A DNA stretch of 64,000 nt from NCBI GenBank assembly GCA_964234715.1, contig OZ174288.1. One strand, written 5' to 3'. The DNA is from Podarcis melisellensis (lineage: Eukaryota). Position 1 is the first letter of the stretch. Each line of letters begins with the position of its first letter. The notes under the pieces are model-generated. The model was not told the DNA's origin. It ran no database searches and worked only from the letters and a program-made list of their open reading frames with translations. The translations under genes and the position numbers were made by a program. This document shows, piece by piece, positions 8,970 to 56,874 of the stretch.

Positions 8970-10040
8970 TTAAACTTCTGATTGCTCGTTGCTATCAGGA
9001 ATAACAGATTTCAGGGTAGCATGACAAAACCGGTTTAAAACAGAGACTTTGGTTTTCTGTTCAATATACAATTTCAGTTTCTCTCTGAAAGTTTCACCTA
9101 GGAAGCTGTAGATAAGAGGATTCAAACAGCTGTTTGAGAAGGCTGCAAGGTTCACAATGTGTCCGGTTAAGGGATAGTTATGTCTGAAAGACTGGTCCCT
9201 TGATGAGGTTTGCTCTGTCTTTTGAAGAAGTTGCACACTTATGAAGACATTTTCAGGAAGCCAGCAGATGAAGAAGACAAGGACAACAACAAAAATCATA
9301 CGAAGAGCTTTCTGTCTGCGTATCCGCAAACTTCTGTGCTTGTGGGCTCTTATCAAGACTCTTACAATTAACGAATAACAAAGGCCTATAATAGCAAAAG
9401 GGATGATAAACCCTAAGGTTATTTCTAGCCACTGTATTTCTTCTACATCTGCAAAACAAAAGGAAACCTCCCCAGCATGTTGCAAATGTACAGCTGTGAA
9501 GGGCACTAGTGCTGCCGAGATAGATGCCAACCAGATGAGGCCACAGCTTAATCTGGCATGTTCCATGGTGCGAAATAAGTTGGACTTCATTACTTTTGCT
9601 AGTGCTATGTATCTGTCAAAACTCATCCATGTTAGGAAGAATATGCTGCTATACATGTTGATTTGAAGGAACAATGACATAAAAGTACAAATTATTGTGA
9701 TATCGTAATACTTTTCGTCGAGATTAAAAACTTCGATGAGAGAGTCAGCCACCAAAATGAGATCTGCTACTGCAAGGTTTATGAAATATAAGTCTGGAAT
9801 AGTCATCTTTTCACGAAAACTTATGTTCACCACTAAAATAAGAATGTTTCCCACGAAACCAATAGGAAAAAGGAATATTGTGTAAAGGCATGATAAGAAA
9901 AGACCTATAATGTATTGCTGGTGTTCTGATTTATCCGCGAGGCTGACAGTTTTGTTTTCATTGCATAGATATGATCCATTTCGTTCAAAATATGTGCTGT
10001 TACAAAGTACTTGAGATGTGGACGCTGTGAAAATTTCCAT
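8970..10040 (-). CDS. GPER1: G protein-coupled estrogen receptor 1 (GPER1/GPR30), single coding exon, 356 aa
   Basis: Contains the hallmark GPER1 sequence [69 protein letters not shown], plus [18 protein letters not shown], [36 protein letters not shown] and a C-terminal PDZ-type SEV. Confidence 0.98.
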
Positions 10041-19459: not shown

Positions 19460-20755
19460 ACAGAATGATATAATTGTATAATTGGAATGGGCCCGATTCT
19501 AGTCCAGCCCCCTACAATGCAGGAATCTTAACTAAAGTGACCATGACATATGGCCATCCAGCCTCCAATGAAGGCGTGTCTGCCACCTTCTGACGAAGTC
19601 TATTACCATCAGAAAGTTTTTCCTAATGTTTAGTCGGAATTTCCTGTCTTGTAACTTGAATCCATTAGTTTGGGTCCCACCCTCGGAGCAGGAGAAAACA
19701 AGCCCCATGTGGCAACCCTTTAGATATTTGAAAATCCTCTAGTCTCCTCTTTTCTGGGCTAAACATACCCAGCTCCTTCAACCTTTCCTCGTAAGGCTTA
19801 GTTTCCAGTCCCTTGATCATCTTGGTTGCCCTCCTGTGCGCACATTGCAGCCTGTCAACATCCTCCTTGTGGTGCTAAGATTTGGACATAGTAGTCCAAG
19901 TTGGTCTGACTAAGGCAGAATATAGTGGTGATTTTCTCTTGATCTGGACACTGTACTTGTGTTGATGCAGCCTAGAATAGCATTAGCTTTTTCTGCTGCT
20001 GCATCACACTGTTGTCTCACATTAAGCTTGTGGTCCAACAAGACCCCTAGATCTTTCAGGCATATCCCATCTTATATTCTTGCAGCTGATTATTCCTGCC
20101 TAAGTGTAGAACATTACATTTGTCCCTACTGAAATTAATTTTGTTAGCTTGGGCCCCGTTCTCCAATCTATTAAGGTTCTTTTGAATTCTGATTCTGTTT
20201 TCTGTGGCATTAGCTACCCCTCCCAGTTTGGTGTCATCTGCAAATTTGATGAGCATCCCCTCATTTCCTTTATCCAAGTCATTTATAAAAATGTTGAACA
20301 ACAGACGCAAGACAGAACCATCCCATGTGGCACCCCACTTTGTCCCTTTGTTCCAGGATGATGAGGAACCATTAATGAGCACTCTTTGGGTTTTGTCGGT
20401 CAACCAGCTACAAATCCATCTAACAGTAACCTCGTCCAACCAACATTTTACCAGCTTCTTCAAGAATATCACAGGGGACTTTGTCAAAAGCCTTATTGAA
20501 ATCAAGATACACCACATCCACAGCATTCACCAATCCACCAAGCTTGTAACTTTATCAAAAAAAGAAATGAGTCTGGCATGACTTGTTTTTGAGACACCCA
20601 TACTGGGTCTTCACAATCACAGCATCCTTTTCTAAGTACTCACAGACTGACCATTTAATTATATGTTCTAGGATCCTTCCTGGTATCAAAAAGCTGATGG
20701 ATTGGTAGTTACCTCAATCTTCTCTCTCCCCCCCCCCCTTTTGAAGATGGGTACA
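19460..20755 (-). mobile_element. CR1 LINE fragment including degenerate RT (ORF 20056-20526)
   Basis: LFNIFINDLD...LIKFADDTKLGG...KCNVLHLGRNN are CR1 RT motifs; CR1 3' tail near 19460-19560. Confidence 0.92.
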
Positions 20756-21381
20756 ACTTCTAATCTCAGAGCCTCAATGTCTATAATTCAGTATAACTAG
20801 TTTGCCTGTTGTTCCGTGCAGTGCTATTCCCTTCTGTTCACTGGAAAGCCTTTTAGAAGCGCCCACATTCAAGCAGGCTGGATTCTGAAAGCTGGACTTC
20901 TTAGGCTAGATAATTCCATGGGTGGTGTTTATTGGTCCAGGATTGGTGAACAGAGAAAAAGGGCCCCCTCTGCAAGTGACTTGTATCCCTTATGAATGTA
21001 TGTTGGGAGGGGGATAAAAATGTACGGACTGAAGGATTATGGTGTATGATAACTTAGTTAATTTTGTTGCTGTAAGAGTCACTTGTAGAATAATACATTA
21101 ACTTCTAGGTGATGCACTTCTTTATCAAGATCTCCCTTCACTCTCCCATGCAGTCTTCCATATTCATTACCCCTTTGTTGATCCTGGAAAAGTTTCTTTT
21201 TATAAAAGCTCTTGACCATGTTGATGTCCTGTTGTTCACTCTGCTATCCATACATCAGCACACAACAACGACGTGCAATAGCAACACAGGAGGAACATTA
21301 AGTAACCATGATTGTAGCTTTCAGCCCCAGCTGGAGAATATTTGTTCCTCAGGTTGTAAGAATAAATAAGCTTGCAAATCT

Positions 21382-21387
21382 TTTATT
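21382..21387 (-). terminator. Candidate polyadenylation signal (AATAAA) for the orphan GPCR
   Basis: tttatt on + strand ~70 nt downstream of the stop codon. Confidence 0.35.
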
Positions 21388-21456
21388 CCTTCAGGTTCTG
21401 TATGTTGGCAGATTTGTAGCTTTTTTCTTCAATGCTAATATTTTGGAAGGCAAAGG

Positions 21457-22497
21457 TCAGTGTGATCCATTTTCAGAGGGCCCAGATGAGACTTCAGCAC
21501 GAGTCTCTGGTATTTCAAGAGGACTGTTACTAGCATGTCTCCTCCTGCAAACTTTTGTGAGATTAGTTATAACATTCAGTAAACCGATTCTGCATGGTTT
21601 ATGAAGGCAAAGAATGATAACTAAACTAACACAGCTTTCGCTGAACAGCAGGATCTCTGCAATATTCATTGTCAGCTCATTTTGGGGTGTCCCTATTATC
21701 CTCTGTATCTTCAAGCTGGTCCTAGAGAGAATCATACTGTTGTAAAATAGACGACACACAAACATTGTTATTGTAATAACCAAAACAGTCAAATATGGGT
21801 GAATATTGTCTCTAGAGGGATGGATTTCCGGCTGAACTTTTTTAACAAACGTTAGAATAAAGCAGAGAAGCTTGGCCAAAGATGGAATGCAGAAGCCAAA
21901 GGTAAATTTAATAATCTCGTATTCAGGCCATGCAAATAAAGGATCTAATTGGCAGTCTGTTTCTTCGTGGTAATTCTCCATTCCCAGCAGTGCCACCACT
22001 ATTAGTGCAGCACAAAAGGCACATATCAGTGCAAATGCAACAGATACCATAGGGTTTTGATGTGCCTTACTAATTAAAGCATTTTGGGGTGGGTGCCTAT
22101 AAAGAAAAAAGCTAAGCACCATGAGGACAAGAAGGTACTGAGAGCTGAAGTAATTCAAATTGAAAAAAAACGACAGCGTTCCACACTCAAAATAGGATAC
22201 TTTGAGATAGGCAGGCCTTGTGATGATGGTGAGCGATAAAAGAATCATTAACATGTTGCTGATGGTGTGAGCAAAAAGCATTATATCTAATTTCTCATTG
22301 GTGCGCTGCATATGGTTCTTGATGAGGATGCCTAAAATAACAATCCCAGCTAGTAGACCAGTTGGTACAAAGAGCGTAATATAGCAGTGCATAAATCTTG
22401 ATATTACATGTTGTGAGAATATGATGTCTTCAAAACTTGTGAATGAATCTCGGCTCTGGCTTGGGTACTTCATCCAGGTCATATTATGAGAGACCAT
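21457..22497 (-). CDS. Orphan class-A-like 7TM receptor, divergent GPER1/GPR146-related paralogue, 346 aa from ATG 22497
   Basis: Uninterrupted ORF with seven hydrophobic segments, an N-terminal N-M-T sequon, Cys3.25 (FECGTL) plus ECL2 Cys (TDCQLD), TM5 GFCIP and TM7 FSESC, aligning by eye to the neighbouring GPER1. The non-ATG extension to 22554 overlaps a splice acceptor. Confidence 0.88.
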   Translation of the reverse strand: MVSHNMTWMKYPSQSRDSFTSFEDIIFSQHVISRFMHCYITLFVPTGLLAGIVILGILIKNHMQRTNEKLDIMLFAHTISNMLMILLSLTIITRPAYLKVSYFECGTLSFFFNLNYFSSQYLLVLMVLSFFLYRHPPQNALISKAHQNPMVSVAFALICAFCAALIVVALLGMENYHEETDCQLDPLFAWPEYEIIKFTFGFCIPSLAKLLCFILTFVKKVQPEIHPSRDNIHPYLTVLVITITMFVCRLFYNSMILSRTSLKIQRIIGTPQNELTMNIAEILLFSESCVSLVIILCLHKPCRIGLLNVITNLTKVCRRRHASNSPLEIPETRAEVSSGPSENGSH

Positions 22498-22528
22498 TCT
22501 TGTGAAGAACTTTGGTTGCTTGGTGTTT

Positions 22529-22560
22529 CTGCAAACTGGAAAACAAACAATCAAAGGACT
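22529..22560 (-). promoter_or_regulatory. Putative splice acceptor(s) of the orphan GPCR coding exon
   Basis: Minus strand agtcctttgattgtttgttttccag|tttgcag|aaac: two AGs (exon start 22535 or 22528) 31-38 nt upstream of the ATG. Confidence 0.6.
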
Positions 22561-24112
22561 TTAAATGTATAGTCAAAGCAGAAGAAAAGTGAGAAAGTAC
22601 CACCGCATATCTTTGGATTTTTAAAATGTCAAAATGTGCTTACAGTGCACCCCAGCTGCAAACCGTAGAGCTCTGTGCTTTGTCAGAAAGGAATGTAGAG
22701 TTGCTGTTGAGCCTGAGTACAATGTTACTTACTTAAGAGTAACTAGGGCAACCTAGCCAGATGGGTGGGGTATAAATAATGAAATTAGTAGTAGTAGTGG
22801 GAGGTGGTCTTGAGACAGCTTCACAAACAATAGAAAATGATGTTTATAGCCTCTATGGGGGAGGGCTTAGTTATTATAATAACTAGAGACACAACCATAG
22901 CCCCAGTAAAAGGACAGGGCGCTCTATTGTCATCTGGTCATTACACTGTTATATCTTTGAATTCCACTATCACAAGTAGATTCAGTAGCAGTTCTACCCT
23001 CTTAGTGCACATTGTGGCTATTGGGTTACTATGTTCACAGTGATTGTTTCAGAATAGTTGTGAAGACTACAAGACTGCAGCAATAGAATTTGAGCAGTAA
23101 TATTACGACCCTTTAATTTTAAATATCCCCAGTCTCATGATGGAACTATTGGAGATTGGGGAAAATAATTGTTTTTAAAAAACTTTTTTAAACACCTTTA
23201 TCTGATTATACTCTTTTGTTAGCTTAGAACTGTGTGTATGTGTTTATAGCAGTTATAAATTCCTAAAGATAGGGTTTTTTAAGGTGAAGCTGACAGGGAA
23301 TTAACTGTAATAGCTCAATCATGTGATGCCATCATGATTCTGTTACCATGAAAAGACATCACTTTCTCTTTTAAACAAATAATAGACTGTGTAAAAAGAT
23401 ACAATAGTTGTTTGCTCTGCAGAAAATGACTGCCATAAATATGGAATGTGTAATTTTATAGGCTACCTAAAAGCACGATTTGTACGTTATCAAAAAGGTG
23501 ATTTCCATATACTTTGTTGAAAGAAATCTGTTGCTAATATTATTCGGAGGTTTTTTAAAAAAGGATTGTGCTGCAATAGGATAAACATTTCATATTTTAA
23601 ATTATGTAGAAAACTATATGGAGCTTTTGGAGTGTAATTATTAGTACATTTTAAAATATAGCTTCTATTTCCCAAGCTTTGTGCTCATATTAAAAGATGT
23701 TTTAGCATATCTGCAATTAAAAAATATAGCAGGCTATGTTTGCTATTTCGTCTTCTGTTTCCTTTGTAACATAAGCATTTCAGTTTTCACATTAATCCCC
23801 AGATTTAATACTGTGGTTTCTTCAAATCATTCAATAATATGCAAAGCTGATCCATTCAGGCAGAGTGTATATGTACAGTGAATTGCAGGGACACTGCAAT
23901 GCCTTGGGTCTCCTATCAGAAGTTTCCATAGAGCCTCATCTAATAATGGAATAATGTTTCTCCCTAAGACTTTCTTCCATAGCTTATATGTTGTTAGTAC
24001 AGTTCTGTCAATGTTAGAATGCTGTGCTTTAAGCTACAGTGAAAGTTTAAGGCTTTGGTTGTATGCCTCATTTAAGAAGACTAAGAAGAGCCCTGCTACA
24101 TTACGCCAAACA

Positions 24113-24327
24113 CAGTGGTACCTCGGGTTAAGAACTTAATTTGTTCCAGAGGTCCGTTCTTAACCTGAAACTGTTCTTAACCTGAAGGACCACTTTAGCT
24201 AATGGGGCCTCCTGCTGCCGCCGTGCAATTTCTGTTCTCATCCTGAAGCAAAGTTCTTAACCTGAGGTACTATTTCTGGGTTAGCGGAGTCTGTAACCTG
24301 AAGCGTATGTAACCCCAGGTACCACTG
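24113..24327. mobile_element. Tc1/mariner MITE (CAGTGGTACCTCGGGTTA family)
   Basis: TIRs cagtggtacctcgggtta / taaccccaggtaccactg + TA; same family as 32628 and 42550, opposite orientation. Confidence 0.88.
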
Positions 24328-24538
24328 TATTCATCTAGTTTACCATCTTTGCATCTTACGTCCCTTAGAGACTTAGAAACAGGACATGAAAACAATAGTC
24401 CTTCCCCAGATCATGCCTCCAAACATGGACTTCAGCTTGGAACTAATGTCTTTTGAACTCAGTTGGACTTTCTTCTCAATAAACATGCACAGAATTAGTC
24501 TGTGAGTATGTTAGACACAGCTGAAATATTAGCTTATT

Positions 24539-24558
24539 CACACACACACACACACACA
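24539..24558 (+). repeat. (CA)n microsatellite
   Basis: Directly visible. Confidence 0.9.
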
Positions 24559-27397
24559 CCCTGACATCCAGCCAAAAATGGCACCCATGTTGACTTTCAA
24601 ACAGTTGAGATCTACTATAAAAATACAGTATCAATAACAAATATTTCCAGTTGTTGGGATACGGGTATGTATGTGCAGAGTGGTGTAATAACATGGGCTT
24701 TTAATTTATTTATTAGACTTCTATCCTGCCATTCCCCCCTCTCCCCTTGTTCTCGCAATAGCCTTCTGCTGTACATTAGGCTAAGGAATTGTGATTTAGG
24801 TCCTTCAGTAAGGCCATGCTAGACGTGAAGTAAGTAGGTCTTGTGTTGCTTTCCTTTCACTGTGAACAGCAAGATGGATAGACTATCTGATTCAAATAAG
24901 GACCATGGTGGGGGTGAATACTCCCTCCCATAGTCCTGATTCAGCCCCCACCCCACCACTGGCTGTTAGTTAAGGGGTGGGGAGGAAGAAGCCCTGCAAT
25001 AAAAGCAAAGCTACCACAGAAAAAGCTATATATGTCTCCTGCCTTTCACCCAAAGAACTTTAAGCAGAATATTTGTTTTCCGTTTCCTTCCTACAAATAC
25101 CTTGTGAGGTAGAATTAGGCTGAGACAGTGACTGCCTTGGTTTTATAGCCAAGAAGGAATTTTGATCCCCAGTTTCTCCAGTCCAAGGTGTTCAAGATTG
25201 AGAGAGCCATGGGATATAATGGTTAAGGTACTGGCCTTTGATGCTTGGACTTTGACCAAGAAGACACAGGATCGAACGCCTGCTGTGCCACAAATCCCTC
25301 TTCATGAACTGCAGGCCAGATTTTTGTCATGTAATTTGGTCCTGAACAGTTATGATCCCTAGCTAGCAGGACCAGTGGTAAGGGATTATGGGAACCGTAG
25401 TCTCAAAACATCTGGAGGGCCGAGTTTGAGGAAGCTGTTCTAGAGCATCACAGGCAGCATGGTTGCATCATTGGCTGAATTATGCTAGATGAAATCAACA
25501 AAACACTTTCCTGTACTGAGGCTTCAGCAATAAGTTTTGGGGGCAGCTTTTTCAATTAGGTATCTTTGCAGCAAGAACCCACAGCTTACAGTAGAAAGGT
25601 GGAGTTGGCTAAAATGAGGTAGCTTTGAAATTGGGATTTGGAGCACCCAGAGCATCAGATGCAAGAAAGGGAAGGTGGGCTGCACACAAAGGACATTAGA
25701 CTAAATTGTTAAGTGGGAGGGAGGGATTTATCTGCTCCACTGGCAATAGCTACCTAGCACTCAGTGATTAGTTCCTTTCCATTTTGCTACCAGAATGAAC
25801 TCTGTTTCATTAATGTAAGTTGAAATGAAACTCACTTGTGGGTTAGAAGAAGAAGAAACAGATTGTTTGCTAACAGAAGAAAAGCATTTAGTGAGAGCAG
25901 CACATCCGCAAAAGCCTGAGCCACTAGGTTATTACAATAATTATACCATTTATAAGACACTGAAAGAGTGTTCAAAGCACATGACATATTATATCAGTGA
26001 CTCTTAAAAAGCAACTTTATGATGTAGGCCAGTATTAGTATCTGCAAATGTTTGTGTTGAGCTTAGTATTAGTACTGCCATTGTCTACCTTTCTGCTTCC
26101 TGACTCACAAGCAAGCTGTCAGGCAAAGTGGCATTTAATAAGCATATTTGTAAGTGGCAATCAGAGTTGTGATTGTTGAGCTTTTTTAAGGAAGACCTCA
26201 ATATTTATTTTTTTTACAAACCCCAGAGTTTTCCAGTTGACTTGCCTATGAAGATCCAGGACAAAGCGCCGCCTTTCAGAAATCCCCCCCAGACATCAAT
26301 TCCGCCTTTGAAATCCCAGTAATGTCCTGGAAAATCCAGACGTGGGGTAGCCCTGCTTGTGATACAATGGATCTAAGTTCTGATAGAATAATATAAGAGT
26401 AGTCTACAGCTTGAGTGTTGAAGAAATGCTTTCCATTTGTGCACTGGCAGAGTGCATTCAACTAGAATAATAGAATTGTAGAGTTGGAAGAGATCCTGAG
26501 GGTAATCTAGTCCCGCTCTGCAATGCAGGAATCTCAGCTAATCTTGAATGCATCTTTTGGATTTGAATTCTAGGGAACTCTTAGATTCATTGCATTTTGT
26601 GTTGCCTGAAAAACACTCAGCAGGCGGCAAATGCATCAAATGTACATCACCACATAGTACATTCTTAGTAAAAACCTTATAATGGCATTGAGAATTCCAT
26701 TTTGTAAAATAAAATGAAAAACATTTATAACTGGAAAGGGTACCTTTTCTGTTAGTGAAGAAAAAATTACATGGAGGTATATAGATTGTGAGGTTCTTTA
26801 ATTTCCATTACTCTGGGAAAATAATTTTTACCACCACCTTTCTCTGATTACCTAGCATAACAGCAAATTTACTGCAGCAATTCTAGCAAGCTGCATGACT
26901 TGTGCATCCCTTCACGTTGTTTAGTGGCTTCTGCAGAATGAAGTGTCTTAGAATATCATCATTTCATGACAACAGCTGAAATTACAGTCAGAACGCATTA
27001 GGTTTAAAGCCATGGATTTCATACTTTTTGCTTTAACGCAGTCCTTCTCATATTACCTTTTCTGCTGAGGATCTTCTGCATATCTTCCATTAATGGGTGT
27101 TGCAGAGCATTCTGGGAAGTATTCTGAGGTGCGCAGTCAGTTTATCCAAAGCACTAACCTAGACATTGGGCCTCATACTTACCACACGTGAAGGGAATGT
27201 CTGTCCTATAACAAACCCAACATTCTTCTTTGGATGCTTGTTGCATGCAAGGGAAGGCATGTTGTAGTAGGCAAGCTTTTAGGGGAGTTTCCCATATTAC
27301 AGATTTTTCTCAGTGCAGAACCTCTCTTTTGCTTCCAAGGAACCCCCAGGGTTTATTTGGAACATAATTTGAACAAGGAAATAGCATTTATTCCTAG

Positions 27398-27408
27398 CAC
27401 GCACGCGC

Positions 27409-27439
<31 letters not shown>
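27398..27439 (+). repeat. (CA)n microsatellite with CG-interrupted 5' part
   Basis: Directly visible. Confidence 0.9.
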
Positions 27440-30400
27440 AATCGTCCTGGCTTTTAGAATATAACTAGATTGGAGCCTAATAGTTAAAGGTTTATTGTTC
27501 ACTATGTTATGTTTTAATAGTTGGATTTTGTTTATGTTTTAGTTATTGTTGTACTGTATTTCTATTTTAATGGTGGTTGTTAGCTGCCCCGGGCAGGATA
27601 TAAGACAAATGAATAAACACATTTTTTTAAAAGTATTTTTAAAAAGAAATGAATGCAGTTCTTTTTTAGGATATGCATTTGGTTTCTTTTTTGAAAAAAA
27701 TAATAATCTGTATACTGTTCACTTCTGTTTCTCAACTTCTTTCTGATCTTTTCTTTCACTGATGATTCTTCCCCTTATTTCTTTCTGACTTTTTCTTACT
27801 CCTCCATTTTAAAGAAAGCCCTTCTCAGGCATTGTGCTGCTAGTATGTTAGGCTTTATTTGTTTTGGCAGTGAATACAAAAATGTTCTGAAATCCTGTTC
27901 TCAGGCTCAGACACACAGCTAATAAATTATCCTTGCGTCCAATAGATGGAGCCGAACCATTCCCCACAACACACAGGAGAGAACTACAGGAGGGCAAGTA
28001 CTGTGAGGGAAATCTCTTGAGAAAGGCAGAACTTGAAATTATTTCCCCCTTGCATGCGTTTGCTTAAAACACTCAAGTCTGGGCATTTCAGTTTAATGAA
28101 TTAAACTGACGACTTATTTGAAAGCTTCCAAGCCGCATTACTATGTTTAGGAATCGTTGTTTTAGAAACCAGATCTATTTTTGTATAGATGCTTAGCATA
28201 TGACAGCCCTTCCCTGGTTTCTTTTCCCAACAGGAGAAAGAAGTTTCTTTTATACAAGCAAGCCTTGTGCGCAACTGGAGTGTTATTGCTATTTTAGCTG
28301 TTTAGTGTAAATGTGTTTATAATTCTTTGCAAAAGATGGTTCTAGGGATTCTGACATAAGTTAAATTAAGAGACAGGATTTGTAGAGGCAGAGAAATAAA
28401 AAATGGAGTTACTTATACAGTTGATTACAGTAAGAATTTAACTGAAGGAATACAGTTTCTACAGAAACAAACAAATTGAGAAGAGATTTTTTTTCTTCTA
28501 CACAGAGGAAGAATGTCAACAGTGTTGTGTTTAAAATCTGTTATGTGTGCAACTCTTGCTTTAGTCTTATTCTAAAACAGTAGAAGGCAACATTCCGGCT
28601 CAGTAGAAAGTTTTGATTCCTCCTCCCCACTTCCTTTTGTTTAAATAGTTGAAGCATCTGGCTTCTTGCACATTTAAGAATTCTGTGACACTTTAATTAT
28701 TTATAAAAGGATACTAGAAGAACAGAAAAATCCTGGTCTCTTTTGTTTTCATAACATTTTTTTTTAGATGTGGTATTTTGCTGCATTTTGTGCAGCTTTA
28801 AGCATATTACTGAAGCAAAGAGGTTGAAAGAACAGAGTTCTTTTCACACTGTTTTTGGTCCTTAGTGATGATGAAAACATTTCATATTTAAAACAAAGTA
28901 GGTCACTTACCCGTGAAACAAAATGCAGATGCAACAGGCTGATTCTGTCTTTATGATCAGATTGATGAGGAAAATAAGTTTTAATGCATACTTGGCTTCC
29001 TGTGTGTGGTGACGTGCTCAGTTCGAAAACTCAGACAACAAAAAAGCACAGTTCTTCTGTAGGAAACAGGAACTTGGTTTCATGTAATTCAAACCATACA
29101 CGTTGCGATTTTAGCCCGCGTATGGCTCCATCATGTGACTTTAAAGTTTGAGTTGACCTACACAGAGTGATGTTTGGGTACTCCAGAACAGAAAAGTAGT
29201 GTTTAGTCATATATTTCTGAGTCTTTGAGGCCATCCAGTGGCTTCTCAGTTATTTTAAATCATGAAGCCATTCTACCCCTATTCACTAATACTGGAAGTA
29301 TGTTTTCACATGGCCAGATGTTTAGCATTTTCAAAATGCTGCACAAGTAAATATAAAATAAAAGTATTTTATACAAGTAGGACCTGCAACAAAATATTAT
29401 CTTATGGAGGCTTCCTGTCCAGGATTCCAGCCAGTCCATTCCATTCACCGCTCCTCTCCCCTGATCTCCCTCCCACTAACAGTCAGTCAGCTTTCCATGC
29501 CCACTGAACGTGCTCAGTGATTTGGCTGTTGTGAAAGTTCATTTCCCTTTTTTTTAAACATATTTTTATGCTCCTTGAAACCTCAGAGTTCTCTGGCCTG
29601 CTGATAGTTCCCTCTTACGCATAAGCAGTGTTTATTAGGCTACATATGGACTAGAAGAAGTGAGATCGCTAGAAGTATAAATGGTAATGATTAAAACACT
29701 CACACCCTTACCTCCCCTCCTTCCAGAAGCTGATGCTGAATACTTTGCCTAGAATCAAAAGTTTGGAAATAAAGATTCCTACCTTCTTGCTGGGTTTGGA
29801 GGCATAATTGTGGCGTGTCCCTGAAATAGCTTGTCCAAAATACCCTATGCATTAAGAGGTTATATTTAAGACAGGGTTTCCCAAACTTGGGTCTCCCAAG
29901 CTATTTTTGGACTACAGCTGGAAACCCAAGTTTGAGAAACCTTGGTTGAAGAGATAGTCTATTTAATCTGCTCACTACTAACCCATAGTGTGCAAGATGG
30001 CTGAATACAATTGTAATTAATGACAATTCTCAACATTTTAATTGACACAGTGCTGTAATTTTCATGCACATTTCCCTCTGACAGTTACTGTTGCTATTCG
30101 AAATTGAATGAGGAAGAAAAAGTGGGCATTCTTTTCAAATGTGGTTTCTCTTGAACACTTATTTTTATAGTCTCAATTTGATTCAGTTGAGCAATCATAG
30201 GATACAGTCATATGAGCTCAGTAAGAAAGTAAACTTTATTCGGATAGCACACAAGGGGCTGTTTTAGTGTGAGTTTTCTTTTCTTTTTTAGTGGTTGGTC
30301 AACTGATTTAGGGCTAACTTTCTGCAGTTCTAGGAGGTTGCAGTCTTTATTAAAGCGAGCATTCAGCAAATTTAAGAGTTTAAATCATTTGCGACTTGGG

Positions 30401-41269: not shown

Positions 41270-42271
41270 CTACGTTATAACTTGCTGAACAACCGTGCGT
41301 TCATGAGAGCACCCTTGATTTCCACAGTGCAGTTTTTTGAGCAGCCTTCGCAATTTGATTGGAAAGTTTTTGTTGATGTATCGGTAAAGTAGAGGCATGA
41401 CAAAACTGCTTGAAAAAGCCAAGAATTTTGACAGTCCCTTGGTAAAATGTAATACTCTAGTGTAATTTTCATCCGTGACTTTTCCTTGCATACTAGTTAA
41501 TGTGTTTACTAGAAGAGTTACATAATAAGGTGTCCATAATGTGAACTGTGTACAAACAGTAGCAATCAAAAGCCTGTGTACTGATGGATCTAGTCTTCCA
41601 GTGTCTTGGTCCAGCGGTGTTGCCTCTTTGCGTATTCGCAGAATTAACACAAGCGCATACAGCACAGCAATGGCTGGTACGACGTATCCAATAAAAACCA
41701 TGATGGCATCTGCTGCTTCTTTGTTCTGCATTTTGGAACATTCTATTATTTTAGTGGAGACATGGTTGCAGACATAAAACAGAAGCGATGAAAAGCTGGT
41801 AAGCATAGCTCCTCCCCAAATAAATCCACATACATGTTTTGTGTTGTATACACTAGACATGTAAGTTCTTGGCAAAGCACGTTCAATGTAGTAGTCCAGG
41901 CTGAGCAGTGTGGTAGAATACATGATAACCAGAGACGATACATTGAACAAGATAAGCAAGGTAATGTAGACTTCATTGTTGAAACTCCAGATGGCCCATT
42001 TTGTACTGGCAGGTCCTAGGAGGTACATTGGTGCAATAGCATTGATGATGAGGCCAGCAATTGCAATATTGACAAAGTAAACATCTGGCATGGTCATAGT
42101 TGCTTTGTTGTATAGGTTGACTAGCACCAGTAGGGCATTATAACACAGGCCAATGGGGAAACAGATGATGAGGTAGAGCAATGAAAAAATGGAAAGTACA
42201 AGATGGAAATCATGGCAAAGATGCTGGTCCTCTATGCTTTTGGTACCATTGAAAGATTCGCAGTTCCACAT
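41270..42271 (-). CDS. GPR146: G protein-coupled receptor 146, single coding exon, 333 aa from ATG 42271
   Basis: [10 protein letters not shown] start, [120 protein letters not shown]; length equals the 333 aa of human GPR146. Confidence 0.97.
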
Positions 42272-42315
42272 AGTGACCTTAACGTGTATGTCTTCTCGGC
42301 TGGTCACCAGCTTTC

Positions 42316-55135: not shown

Positions 55136-56107
55136 CAGTGTTTCCCAACCTTTTTTGGGCAAAGGCACACTTGTTTCATGAAAAAAATCTCGAGGCACAC
55201 CACCATTAGAAAATGTTTAAAAAATTAACTGTGTGCCTATATTGACTATATATAAAATAACTCTCTTTAATAGGCATCAAATAAACACAAAGAAAGTATT
55301 TTATAATTACTTTATTATGAAATAGGACGCACCTACTTTTTTGGGGGGGGGAAATAAAGGAAATTTTTTTCCCTTTATTTCCCCCCCCCCCCAAAACCAG
55401 GTCGGGGAACAGTGGGATGGCGGTGCTGCGCCTCCCTGCTGTCCTCGAGCTTGTGGGGCTGGCCCATGTCTGCCTGGCGTGAGGGGCGCTCTGCTTCAGG
55501 GCGCCCCGTGCTGCCAGCTGCCGCCCGCAAGCCTTGCGCTCCTGGGGGGAGATCCCCCGGGTGCGCAAGGCTTGCCGACACCAGCGCGGAGCACGGGGCG
55601 TCCTCCGAAGGGCGCCCCGTGCTCCGCGCTGCCAGCTGCCGCCCGCAAGCCTTGCGCTCTCGGGGGGAGATCCCCCGGGTGCGCAAGGCTGGCCAACACC
55701 AGCGCGGAGCACGGGGCGTCCTCCAAAGGGCGCCCCGTGCTCCGTGCTGCCTGCTTCCGCCCGCAAGCCTTGCGCTCTCGGGGGGAGATCCCCCGGGTGC
55801 GCAAGGCTTGCCGACACCAGCGCGGAGCACGGGGCGTCCTCCGAAGGTTGCCCCGTGCTCCGCACTGCCAGCTGCTGCCCGCAAGCCTTGCGCTCCTGGC
55901 GGGAGATCCCCCGGGTGCGCAAGGCTGGCCAACACCAGCGCGGAGCACGGGGCGGCCTCCGAAGGGCGCCCCGTGCTCCGTGCTGCCGGCTGCCGCCTGC
56001 AAGCCTTGCGCTCCCGCCGCCCGACTCGCCCGCCTCCCTCCCACGGCACACCAGGCAACGTCTCGCGGCACACTAGTGTGCCGCGGAACACCGGTTGGGA
56101 AACACTG
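55136..56107. mobile_element. Young non-autonomous hAT element (972 bp) carrying a GC-rich tandem array
   Basis: TIRs cagtgtttcccaacc / ggttgggaaacactg; TSD atctagtc (55128-55135, 56108-56115); inserted in a CR1-type tail that itself lies within an older PLE-like fragment. Confidence 0.92.
55499..56013. repeat. 118-bp GC-rich minisatellite, ~4.4 copies, each unit palindromic
   Basis: Units start at 55499 (111 bp), 55610, 55728, 55846 and 55964. Confidence 0.95.
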
Positions 56108-56874
56108 ATCTAGTCCACCCCCCTGCAATGCAGGATTAATTTATTAGTTGACTTAAAAATTAATCTTTAAGGTGCTACAATATTTAGCTGTTTCAGCCAA
56201 AACTTCTTTTGAGTCTTGCTTAATACTACAGTAGACATGCAGATACCAGACTTAAATGAATACTTCGTATCTCTGTCTATCGTTCATATATATTGTGAAA
56301 CAGGATTAAAAGTTCTTTTGAATCTGTTAGCATTAAAATACCAAGGCAAGTCTGTTACAATCTAATGAAGTTTCATCTTTTGCTAACCATCTCTTCTAAT
56401 GACTTAATAAAAATGCAGCTGGATTGCTGACTTTAACTTATTGCAACATAAAATGTAAAATCACAGCTTTGTAATATTTTGTGTACCATTATATTTCTTC
56501 CTTAAATCTGTTGGTATAACCTTGTATTTTATGAATGACAAAATAGAAAGTATTAAAGTTACTGATCCATTTTAATGTATACAATACATATTTCTAGAAA
56601 AAATGCAGTAAAGAAAGTTGATCTAAGGTTAGATGAAGTTTAATTAGATATAAGATCCATAATATTGAACCAAAGATATCTACATACACAATTTCCTAAC
56701 AGATTACCTTTTTAAAAAAATTATGAATCGTCTCACAGGTGCTTACTGCCTTCTGATGCAGAAGTTCTATGCTTTTGCTCATTAACTGTTTCCCTGTATT
56801 ATAGCAAAAACAACACCCTTTAATTCCCTTTGTTTTAAAAAGCAAGCTACAAAGCAACGTAGCTGAACACTCAC

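Follow-up and report, generated by a model that had tools for sequence, protein, structure and literature searches.

A conserved seven-transmembrane gene without DRY or NPxxY between GPR146 and GPER1 in Podarcis, orthologous to mouse C130050O18Rik

What kind of gene lies between those for GPR146 and GPER1 in the lizard Podarcis melisellensis, with an open frame of receptor length and almost none of the motifs by which class-A receptors are recognized? The window, meaning the whole 64,000-nucleotide stretch of contig OZ174288.1 (assembly GCA_964234715.1) that was analyzed, had earlier been read by eye. The original prediction took the frame to be an intact orphan GPCR, an ancient tandem paralogue that had been lost in mammals, had its signaling motifs erased and might be a decoy, an arrestin-biased receptor or a heterodimer partner, with no annotated gene known at this place in human, and several of these points have fared differently from one another. 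The relevant parts of the window are:

8970..10040, minus strand: GPER1 coding exon, 356 aa; 99% against Podarcis raffonei/lilfordi GPER1 and 89% against quail GPER1
20978..21456, minus strand: 3' UTR of the orphan gene, minimum extent, covered by the transcript contig and stranded reads
21457..22497, minus strand: orphan 7TM coding sequence, a single exon of 346 codons plus stop (ORF listing, homologues, dN/dS, AlphaFold)
22498..22528, minus strand: 5' UTR within the coding exon, 3' of the acceptor used by the RNA contig (AG 22530-22529)
41270..42307, minus strand: GPR146 coding exon, its ORF listed from GTG; 76% against gar GPR146

All three receptor-like genes are on the minus strand, with GPER1 downstream of the orphan frame and GPR146, whose start is likely the ATG at 42271, upstream of it; the orphan gene is itself housed in an intron of a WKF-domain (C7orf50-like) gene on the opposite strand. 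In the ORF listing its frame is open over 21457..22554 (minus strand) with the ATG at 22497, and the 346 codons, acceptor, ATG and sequon described earlier are all present in the sequence. The sequon is N-M-T at residues 5-7, and an H-N-M-[ST]-W motif is kept across tetrapods. Two acceptors stand in tandem 5' of the ATG (...ttttccag/tttgcag/aaac), their AGs ending at 22536 and 22529. The AG at 22537-22536 is the acceptor conserved across species, a YAG 20-60 nt 5' of the ATG being kept in all 7 species compared, lizard and stoat among them; the RNA contig instead uses AG 22530-22529. An Rfam search of 20000-28000 gave no match.

Runs X1 and X5, on which the expression data draw, are taken to be RNA by guess. 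Record 1 of X1 is a transcript-like contig of 2150 nt that tracks the window from 21001 to 22529, its record beginning 23 letters past 21001, and that departs exactly at the acceptor, with some 600 nt continuing elsewhere; this remainder has no placement within 22530-27000 at ≥95% identity. Stranded reads over the gene are from one strand only and occupy bins 21001-21600, neighboring non-repeat bins being empty. Together these data support transcription of the orphan gene from the minus strand, and its splicing, in Podarcis. Of the two AATAAA signals, at 21387-21382 and 20933-20928, the former is the nearby one that had been pointed out; it is there, but transcripts read through it, and since both the contig and the stranded reads continue for 400 nt or more beyond, the real 3' end lies further downstream. 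A further contig joint, 22441 to 26470 with 13 extra letters, is present in two runs and is a probable assembly artefact because 26470-26530 is a common repeat tail.

On comparison of sequences the orphan frame represents in Podarcis a single-copy family of jawed vertebrates, and it is the orthologue of mouse C130050O18Rik. Family orthologues at 23-98% identity were found in squamates, tuatara, turtles, crocodilians, birds, amphibians, ray-finned fishes, a shark and mammals, the sauropsid homologues alone numbering 126 (52-98% identity). Loss in mammals thus has to be abandoned: the mammalian orthologues include those of platypus, marsupials, afrotheres, carnivores, perissodactyls, bats, moles, shrews, camels, tree shrew, colugo, lagomorphs and many rodents. 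Nor is the gene unannotated, being LOC114584942 (98% identical) in Podarcis muralis and C130050O18Rik in rodents. All the family's names are placeholders, however (mouse C130050O18Rik, rat LOC102546864, elsewhere 'uncharacterized LOC...'), with rodent members titled 'RIKEN cDNA C130050O18 gene'. The absence of an annotated human gene, as had been remarked, fits the finding that no primate was among the protein homologue matches, primate DNA being outside the search; a single human protein, among the hits to GPER1, was set aside. Ruminants, pigs, cetaceans and most teleosts likewise gave no hits. In a tree run with GPER1 and GPR146 the family forms one clade on a long branch (support 100/99), separate from both and ordered much like the species tree, with the Nannospalax 'RIKEN cDNA C130050O18 gene' nesting in the mammal subclade. 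The setting is also shared. In quail and leatherback turtle (the latter sequence being the main coding exon only, from its ATG) the orthologue lies within the WKF gene, and GPER1 follows it at a distance of 8-9.5 kb. P. muralis, Elgaria and stoat likewise have the WKF host at the locus. Gene models of gar and of GPR146 share one cluster, including a fused 792-aa model.

The literature on the family is slight. C130050O18Rik has been described as a GPCR-like transcript of microglia and macrophages that depends on CSF1R and that most vertebrates other than primates possess as an orthologue; it is lost from the brain of the Csf1r-knockout rat, and in mouse the orthologue is expressed by microglia and by the majority of tissue macrophages (PMC7941205); expression, with down-regulation, is also recorded in RAW264.7 macrophages (PMC3716731). 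The vertebrate GPCR cartography of PMC6504862 lists the clade neither near GPER1 nor among its 'other families', and a literature search by gene name found no functional study. Between the rodent proteins and that of the lizard there is some 39-42% identity; they belong to the same orthologous clade, have the family motifs in common and share the WKF/C7orf50-like niche, as examined in P. muralis and stoat. Macrophage expression is documented for rodents alone (PMC7941205), and mammal members differ from the lizard protein in having lost P5.50 and in having a shorter tail.

Is the product a class-A receptor at all? Pfam PF00001 (7tm_1) gave no match to it at E≤1 and matches just 1 of 31 family members at E≤0.01, yet the AlphaFold model, built on a 63-sequence alignment, is a seven-TM bundle with helix 8 (pLDDT 88.6, pTM 0.84) of class-A fold; an earlier input of 21 sauropsid sequences had given pLDDT 61 and weak Foldseek scores. 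Foldseek TM-scores against class-A receptors now reach 0.78, and VIA Z values against class-A structures are 25-26.5 over about 270 residues (GPR30: Z 25.2, 19% identity). GPER1 heads the profile search of the PDB (E 4e-14), ahead of GALR1 (8e-11), CCR3 (2e-8), CCR6 and CXCR2, which bears out the idea of a very old kinship; hhalign pairs the family with GPER1 at 98% probability (E 8e-14), and BLASTP aligns the protein with the window's own GPER1 at 23% identity over 300 residues (E 8e-12). With GPR146 hhalign gave 84% (E 8e-6) and BLASTP no significant match. Given the strength of this profile and fold evidence, a sub-threshold Pfam match to Voltage_CLC was dismissed as noise. As modeled, the orphan protein is a class-A-fold 7TM protein whose nearest characterized relative is GPER1, and from that relationship the family most probably originated by an ancient tandem duplication predating the split of sharks from bony vertebrates. 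An orthologue or subtype of GPER1 it is not: identity is 23%, the clade is separate and long-branched, and the true GPER1 is next door.

The by-eye motif alignment to GPER1 was reproduced by BLASTP. In a MAFFT alignment, in which two GPER1 sequences accompany 63 members of the family, N1.50 is replaced by G51, D2.50 by N81, DRY by S129-F130-F131, W4.50 by L157, W6.48 by R249 and NPxxY by S291-L292..I295, with P6.50 also replaced; C6.47 (C248) and P5.50 (P205) are retained, and the C3.25-ECL2 disulfide pair (C105 and C182) is invariant in the 63 sequences. DRY and NPxxY are missing from all 63, shark included. 'Erased' is a misleading word for the canonical motifs: what stands in their place is an equally conserved set particular to the family and already present in the shark member. 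The consensus at the microswitches is G, N, a hydrophobic triplet, L, C-R-L-F and S-L-x-x-I, and ECL2 carries CQLDPLxAWPEYEIxK, TM6 CRLFYN and position 7.39 an invariant Glu. In residue terms the invariant set, nearly all of which belongs to the outer half, comprises R94-P95-x-Y97 (ECL1), C105...LSFFxN (outer TM3), C182-Q-L-D185-P-L...Y193..K197 (ECL2 and outer TM5), C248-R249-L-x-Y252 (TM6), and E274 and A280-E281 (outer TM7).

A protein that Pfam 7tm_1 does not recognize and from which every hallmark motif is gone might be thought a decaying relic, its open frame a chance survival in the lizard. Against this stand intact frames in more than 190 clusters, which range from a shark up to mammals, the invariance of the family-specific motifs, spliced and strand-specific transcripts, and pairwise dN/dS among orthologues (NG86) of 0.14-0.25. 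No orthologue examined interrupts the frame, and with dN/dS that low a chance open frame is excluded. The reading as a pseudogene is refuted by the present data and deserves next to no residual credence; the gene is, as had been supposed, intact, and it is under purifying selection and expressed.

That selection is unevenly spread over the protein. Of the positions conserved at ≥90%, the outer half has 31 and the inner half 5. Over 25 matched taxa the entropy is 1.29 bits outside and 1.93 inside (p 9e-10), with 16 invariant columns outside and none inside, whereas GPER1 in the same taxa runs in the opposite direction (0.56 outer, 0.32 inner, p 0.006) and has 81 invariant positions in its cytoplasmic half. 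Partitioned in the same way, omega comes to 0.12-0.21 outside, against 0.20-0.45 inside, and the family is least conserved in ICL1-3, the inner halves of the helices and the C-tail. As read from these alignments, selection on the orphan gene is mainly on the extracellular half, the mirror image of GPER1.

What might such a protein do? The best explanation overall, with a probability of roughly 55%, is that the gene is a C130050O18Rik-family orthologue whose product would be a ligand-binding 7TM protein without classical G-protein activation. Its conserved extracellular pocket would receive a ligand that is itself extracellular and conserved, and that might be cationic or a peptide, as suggested by the invariant Glu at 7.39, a residue that chemokine receptors also use. 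The role would be that of a binding, scavenging or decoy receptor, or of a co-receptor, and by analogy with rodents the site of action would be cells of the macrophage lineage; that ligand binding in the extracellular pocket, absence of classical activation and the macrophage-lineage setting all hold jointly has somewhat less than an even chance. The poorly conserved cytoplasmic face and tail fit a decoy or binding role better than conserved arrestin coupling. More tentatively, the family could be an unrecognized class of macrophage-lineage, ligand-capturing 7TM proteins, fixed before sharks and bony vertebrates separated and lost in primates, with a pocket formed of Glu7.39, Arg6.48 and CQLDPL...YE..K for a cationic, peptide or chemokine-like ligand, and with no conserved G-protein or arrestin interface. 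If true, the family would amount to a decoy, scavenger or co-receptor of ancient origin that stands apart from the known ACKRs.

Missing DRY and NPxxY are not proof of absent G-protein coupling, some divergent, motif-poor receptors being still able to signal, and a minority view that should be kept in mind, though it seems unlikely, is that the orphan protein engages G proteins or arrestins through a non-canonical network, perhaps constitutively with ECL2 as a built-in agonist. In such a network R6.48, E7.39 and E7.45, for example, might substitute for the CWxP and NPxxY switches. The class-A fold with helix 8, the conserved H299-K-P-C-R and C317 region, the kept C6.47 and conserved charged residues within the bundle that could form a new switch are all in keeping with it, as is the motif-poor state of the neighboring GPR146. 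The inner half too remains under purifying selection (omega 0.2-0.45), so that a lineage-adapted intracellular partner may exist, and ECL2, highly conserved as it is, may serve not as a ligand site but as a tethered agonist or a lid belonging to the protein itself. It is harder to reconcile signaling with a cytoplasmic half in which none of the positions is invariant over 25 matched taxa where GPER1 has 81, with ICL1-3 and tail being the most variable parts, or with the want of DRY and NPxxY in all members down to the shark. More improbable again is an accessory subunit or heterodimer partner that binds no ligand itself and modulates another membrane protein, be it GPER1, GPR146 or some receptor of macrophages. 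More than 400 million years beside GPER1 and GPR146 and the lack of signaling motifs would suit it, but conservation, judged from sequence, gathers in the loops and in the outer helix halves that line the pocket rather than on surfaces turned to the lipid. Expression also tells against such a partnership: in rodents that of C130050O18Rik tracks macrophages (PMC7941205). GPER1 is more broadly expressed.

Comparison with better known receptors places the preferred reading, binding without classical activation, in context. GPER1 and the orphan protein, at 22-23% identity, have in common the class-A fold and the C3.25-ECL2 cysteines, and their genes, which lie on one strand, each have one coding exon preceded by an acceptor; GPER1, unlike its neighbor, retains N1.50, D2.50, DRY, CWLP and NPLIY, and at 89% identity between lizard and quail it is most conserved in its cytoplasmic half, the reverse of the orphan. 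GPR146 is likewise a divergent, orphan-like class-A receptor of the same gene cluster and the second-nearest named cluster by language-model features; homology to it is weak, and 7tm_1 recognizes 99% of its Atlas cluster. Profile similarity to the chemokine receptors CCR3, CCR6, CXCR1 and CXCR2 (E 1e-8 to 1e-6) is weaker than that to GPER1 and GALR1. ACKR1-4 have, like the orphan family, lost the DRY-type G-protein motif. ACKRs keep NPxxY and usually CWxP too; the orphan gene lies outside the chemokine-receptor loci and has far more motifs missing. Shared with the ACKRs are an acidic 7.39, invariant in the orphan family, and immune-cell expression in rodents (PMC7941205).

The gene itself was already known, as an uncharacterized LOC in many genomes and, for its rodent orthologue, from one mention as a GPCR-like macrophage gene. 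What is added here is its age, at least that of the common ancestor of sharks and bony vertebrates, its constant place between GPR146 and GPER1, the lack of DRY or NPxxY at any time in the surveyed lineages, and selection chiefly on the extracellular half, opposite to GPER1. From age and synteny, motif absence and outer-half selection there follows a testable hypothesis for this orphan, that of binding without classical transduction. Expression in rodent microglia and macrophages, with apparent absence from primates, means that there could be a hidden species difference touching the models of macrophage and microglial biology that mouse and rat provide. Even within the family there is some latitude: position 2.50 is D or E in fishes and amphibians and not in amniotes, and so mechanism may differ between clades.

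The intact frame on which the original prediction rested is confirmed: the candidate, an orphan seven-transmembrane (7TM) gene, lies between two single-exon receptor genes, all three on the same strand, and its reading frame remains open upstream of the ATG as far as 22554.

8970-10040, minus strand, GPER1, single-exon receptor gene
21457-22497, minus strand, candidate coding sequence, intact, 346 codons from ATG (ORF listing)
41270-42307, minus strand, GPR146, single-exon receptor gene

The window's GPER1 is 99% identical to that of Podarcis raffonei and P. lilfordi, and the candidate 98% identical to P. muralis LOC114584942. Shortly 5′ of the candidate ATG, two splice acceptors stand in tandem, the one AG ending at 22536 and the other at 22529; in lizards, python, alligator, quail and stoat, a pyrimidine tract followed by YAG is found 20-60 nt 5′ of the ATG. 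The AATAAA pointed to earlier is present as a signal but does not mark the end of the transcript, whose 3′ end lies past it. Directly downstream of the 3′ UTR, on the same strand, is a LINE fragment (20056-20526, minus strand) with a 156-aa ORF and reverse-transcriptase-like motifs (…FADDTKL…). Elsewhere in the window, a GC-rich tandem repeat at 55506-56016 (118-bp unit, 4.3 copies, 91% matches) is the source of long, spurious ORFs that run over 55206-56128 in each of the six frames.

Coding sequences of the candidate's orthologues were retrieved from six further species, each of them intact, and pairwise dN/dS (Nei-Gojobori) is 0.14-0.25, omega for the window sequence being 0.16 against P. 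muralis and 0.23 against Elgaria (dS 0.42); no joined spliced models were used, and for leatherback turtle, where an isoform has a coding exon further upstream, the sequence was taken only from the main-exon ATG. That the gene is a pseudogene, for which ratios near 1 or frameshifts would have spoken, is effectively refuted. A 2150-nt transcript contig, from a run presumed to be RNA and a related Podarcis (~2% divergent), tracks the window over 21001-22529 and departs from it exactly at the AG acceptor, the junction anticipated by the original prediction, with ~600 nt further mapping elsewhere, which is how a spliced mRNA would look. Raw-read coverage in two stranded RNA-seq runs is low across 21001-22600 and zero in the non-repeat bins flanking the candidate; the first mate is always on the plus strand, which, given the usual library type, means minus-strand RNA, and since the host gene is on the opposite strand these reads are not host-intron signal. 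The candidate is a real, selected and expressed gene.

The original prediction took the gene to be unknown and lost in mammals, and neither view survives. A word-index search gave 126 homologues at 52-98% identity, all sauropsid among the 120 matches listed, spanning squamates, tuatara, turtles, crocodilians and birds. Exhaustive search of representatives, together with cluster names, added newt, frog, sturgeons, bichirs, bowfin, gar and Arapaima, and further a shark (Mustelus) and mustelids. With the stoat protein as seed, a second search returned 71 clusters, taking in platypus, at least six marsupials, afrotheres, dog, seals, horse, donkey, rhinoceros, bats, moles, shrews, hedgehog, camels, tree shrew, colugo, hare, pika and many rodents, two of the rodent entries carrying the name ‘RIKEN cDNA C130050O18 gene’. 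Among the family matches of this protein search there were no primates, in agreement with PMC7941205; a GPER1 control search of the same database returned several. Artiodactyls besides camels, and most teleosts, were likewise missing from the family match lists.

In a maximum-likelihood tree all family members form one clade (support 100/99), with fish, amphibian, mammal and sauropsid subclades matching the species tree and with GPER1 and GPR146 outside, which indicates 1:1 orthology. The gene order is also conserved: quail and leatherback turtle both have GPER1 8-9.5 kb downstream of the candidate orthologue, on its strand, and these two, like P. muralis, Elgaria and stoat, have the orthologue within the opposite-strand WKF-domain (C7orf50-like) gene. 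By tree and synteny the candidate thus belongs to the orthologue group of mouse C130050O18Rik and rat LOC102546864. In gars a fused gene model joins the orthologue to GPR146; one such, P0163 (Atractosteus spatula, 792 aa, named ‘GP146 protein, partial’), is an annotation artefact that incidentally shows the gar genes to be adjacent.

Microglia and most tissue macrophages express the mouse gene, and the rat transcript is among those that disappear from every brain region in Csf1r-knockout rats (PMC7941205). After Brucella infection of RAW264.7 macrophages the gene was ~1.8-fold down-regulated on microarray (PMC3716731). Our literature search found no functional study of the family, which is unmentioned in a survey of vertebrate class-A clades (PMC6504862). 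One sentence in the literature already covers the gene's existence, GPCR-like nature, wide vertebrate distribution and primate absence; what appears to be new here is that the family reaches down to sharks, its own motif set, and a polarity of conservation reversed relative to GPER1.

BLASTP aligns all seven helices with the window's GPER1 (23% identity over 300 residues, E 8e-12), and this, with motif mapping from a 65-sequence alignment, reproduces the motif table drawn up by eye. N1.50 is G51, D2.50 is N81, DRY is S129-F130-F131, W4.50 is L157, W6.48 is R249 and NPxxY is S291-L292..I295; P5.50 (P205) and C6.47 (C248) are kept, and neither C3.25 (C105) nor the ECL2 cysteine (C182) varies. 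None of 63 family members has DRY or NPxxY. Judged from these alignments, the class-A motifs are replaced rather than eroded, the family having the conserved set listed here.

Positions invariant or at least 90% conserved in 63 sequences, shark to mammals
TM1: R34, Y39
TM2: D71, S88
ECL1: R94-P95-x-Y97
Outer TM3: C105, L108-S109-F110, N113, Y116
ECL2: L170, G172, C182-Q183-x-D185-P186-L187-x-A189
Outer TM5: Y193, K197, G201
TM6: C248, L250, Y252, R259, K263
TM7: E274, A280-E281, F285, S288-C289
Helix 8: H299, C317

Position 2.50 retains D/E in amphibians and most non-teleost fishes and is N/S in amniotes, and P5.50 is kept in all groups but mammals; these changes are lineage-specific, later secondary losses. 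The Pfam 7tm_1 model, proposed earlier as a check, does not detect the candidate protein at E<=1 and detects only 1 of 31 family members.

The AlphaFold model (63-sequence alignment) is confident (pLDDT 88.6, pTM 0.84); besides seven helices and helix 8, it shows ECL1 and ECL2 with short beta-hairpins. It can be overlaid on class-A receptors of the peptide, chemokine and opioid types, as well as on GPR30 (TM-scores from Foldseek up to 0.78; VIA Z 25-26.5, that for GPR30 being 25.2 at 19% identity). Against solved-structure sequences the family profile ranks GPER1 first (E 4e-14), then GALR1 (8e-11), CCR3, CCR6, CXCR2 and CXCR1; profile-profile comparison gives 98% probability with GPER1 (E 8e-14) and 84% with GPR146 (E 8e-6), whose profile is shallow. 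The candidate is a class-A superfamily member by fold and profile homology that the Pfam model misses and that lacks every one of the activation microswitches. Because it is adjacent to GPER1 and matches it best, the simplest history would be that a tandem duplication took place in the GPR146-GPER1 region long ago, before the gnathostomes radiated. Treatment of the candidate as a GPER1 subtype was considered and rejected. It resembles the atypical chemokine receptors in lacking DRY, as does its rodent orthologue in immune-cell expression.

Where, then, is the constraint? With helix boundaries from the AlphaFold model and each helix halved, of the positions at least 90% conserved in 63 sequences 31 fall in the extracellular half (the ECLs and the outer halves of the helices) and 5 in the intracellular half, ICL1-3 and the tail being the most variable regions. 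Over 25 matched taxa, column entropy averages 1.29 bits outside versus 1.93 inside (Mann-Whitney p 9e-10), with 16 versus 0 invariant columns, whereas GPER1 in the same taxa has the opposite pattern (0.56 versus 0.32, p 0.006; 67 versus 81 invariant columns). Partitioned dN/dS in sauropsids is 0.12-0.21 in the outer half and 0.20-0.45 in the inner, with the termini at 0.22-0.63; the inner half is therefore relaxed yet not neutral.

This class-A-derived 7TM protein is constrained at its extracellular pocket and loops, while its cytoplasmic face lacks all the conserved transducer-coupling residues and varies freely among lineages. The reading we favour, at a probability of roughly 35-40%, is that it binds a conserved extracellular ligand without classical G-protein activation, in which case it might serve as scavenger, decoy, binding receptor or co-receptor and, by analogy with rodents, would act in macrophage-lineage cells. 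E281 maps to position 7.39. Glutamate there is characteristic of chemokine receptors, in which it anchors cationic ligands, and the parallel may be a lead to the type of ligand. A non-canonical or constitutively signalling receptor, working through a novel network of charged residues (R6.48, E7.39, E7.45) or with ECL2 acting as tethered agonist, is somewhat unlikely, and an accessory or heterodimer subunit, also among the roles first suggested, distinctly more so. The arrestin-biased role suggested with it is a possible one that draws no support from the tail and intracellular loops, both poorly conserved.

Two further features of the RNA data deserve mention. Contigs of two studies join 22441, within the candidate coding sequence, to 26470 with 13 letters inserted (depth 11 in run X1, 31 in run X5, both runs presumed to be RNA); 26470-26530 resembles the common tail of a reptile/bird repeat, and the joint is probably an assembly artefact. 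Short segments at 24100-24335 and 25350-25430 stand out by huge RNA depth, seen on both strands (up to ~2e5 as contig word depth and ~300 as raw depth, versus ~1 across the candidate), with numerous internal joints and loose ends; neither matches Rfam at gathering score, and they are probably abundant SINE-like interspersed repeats transcribed genome-wide.
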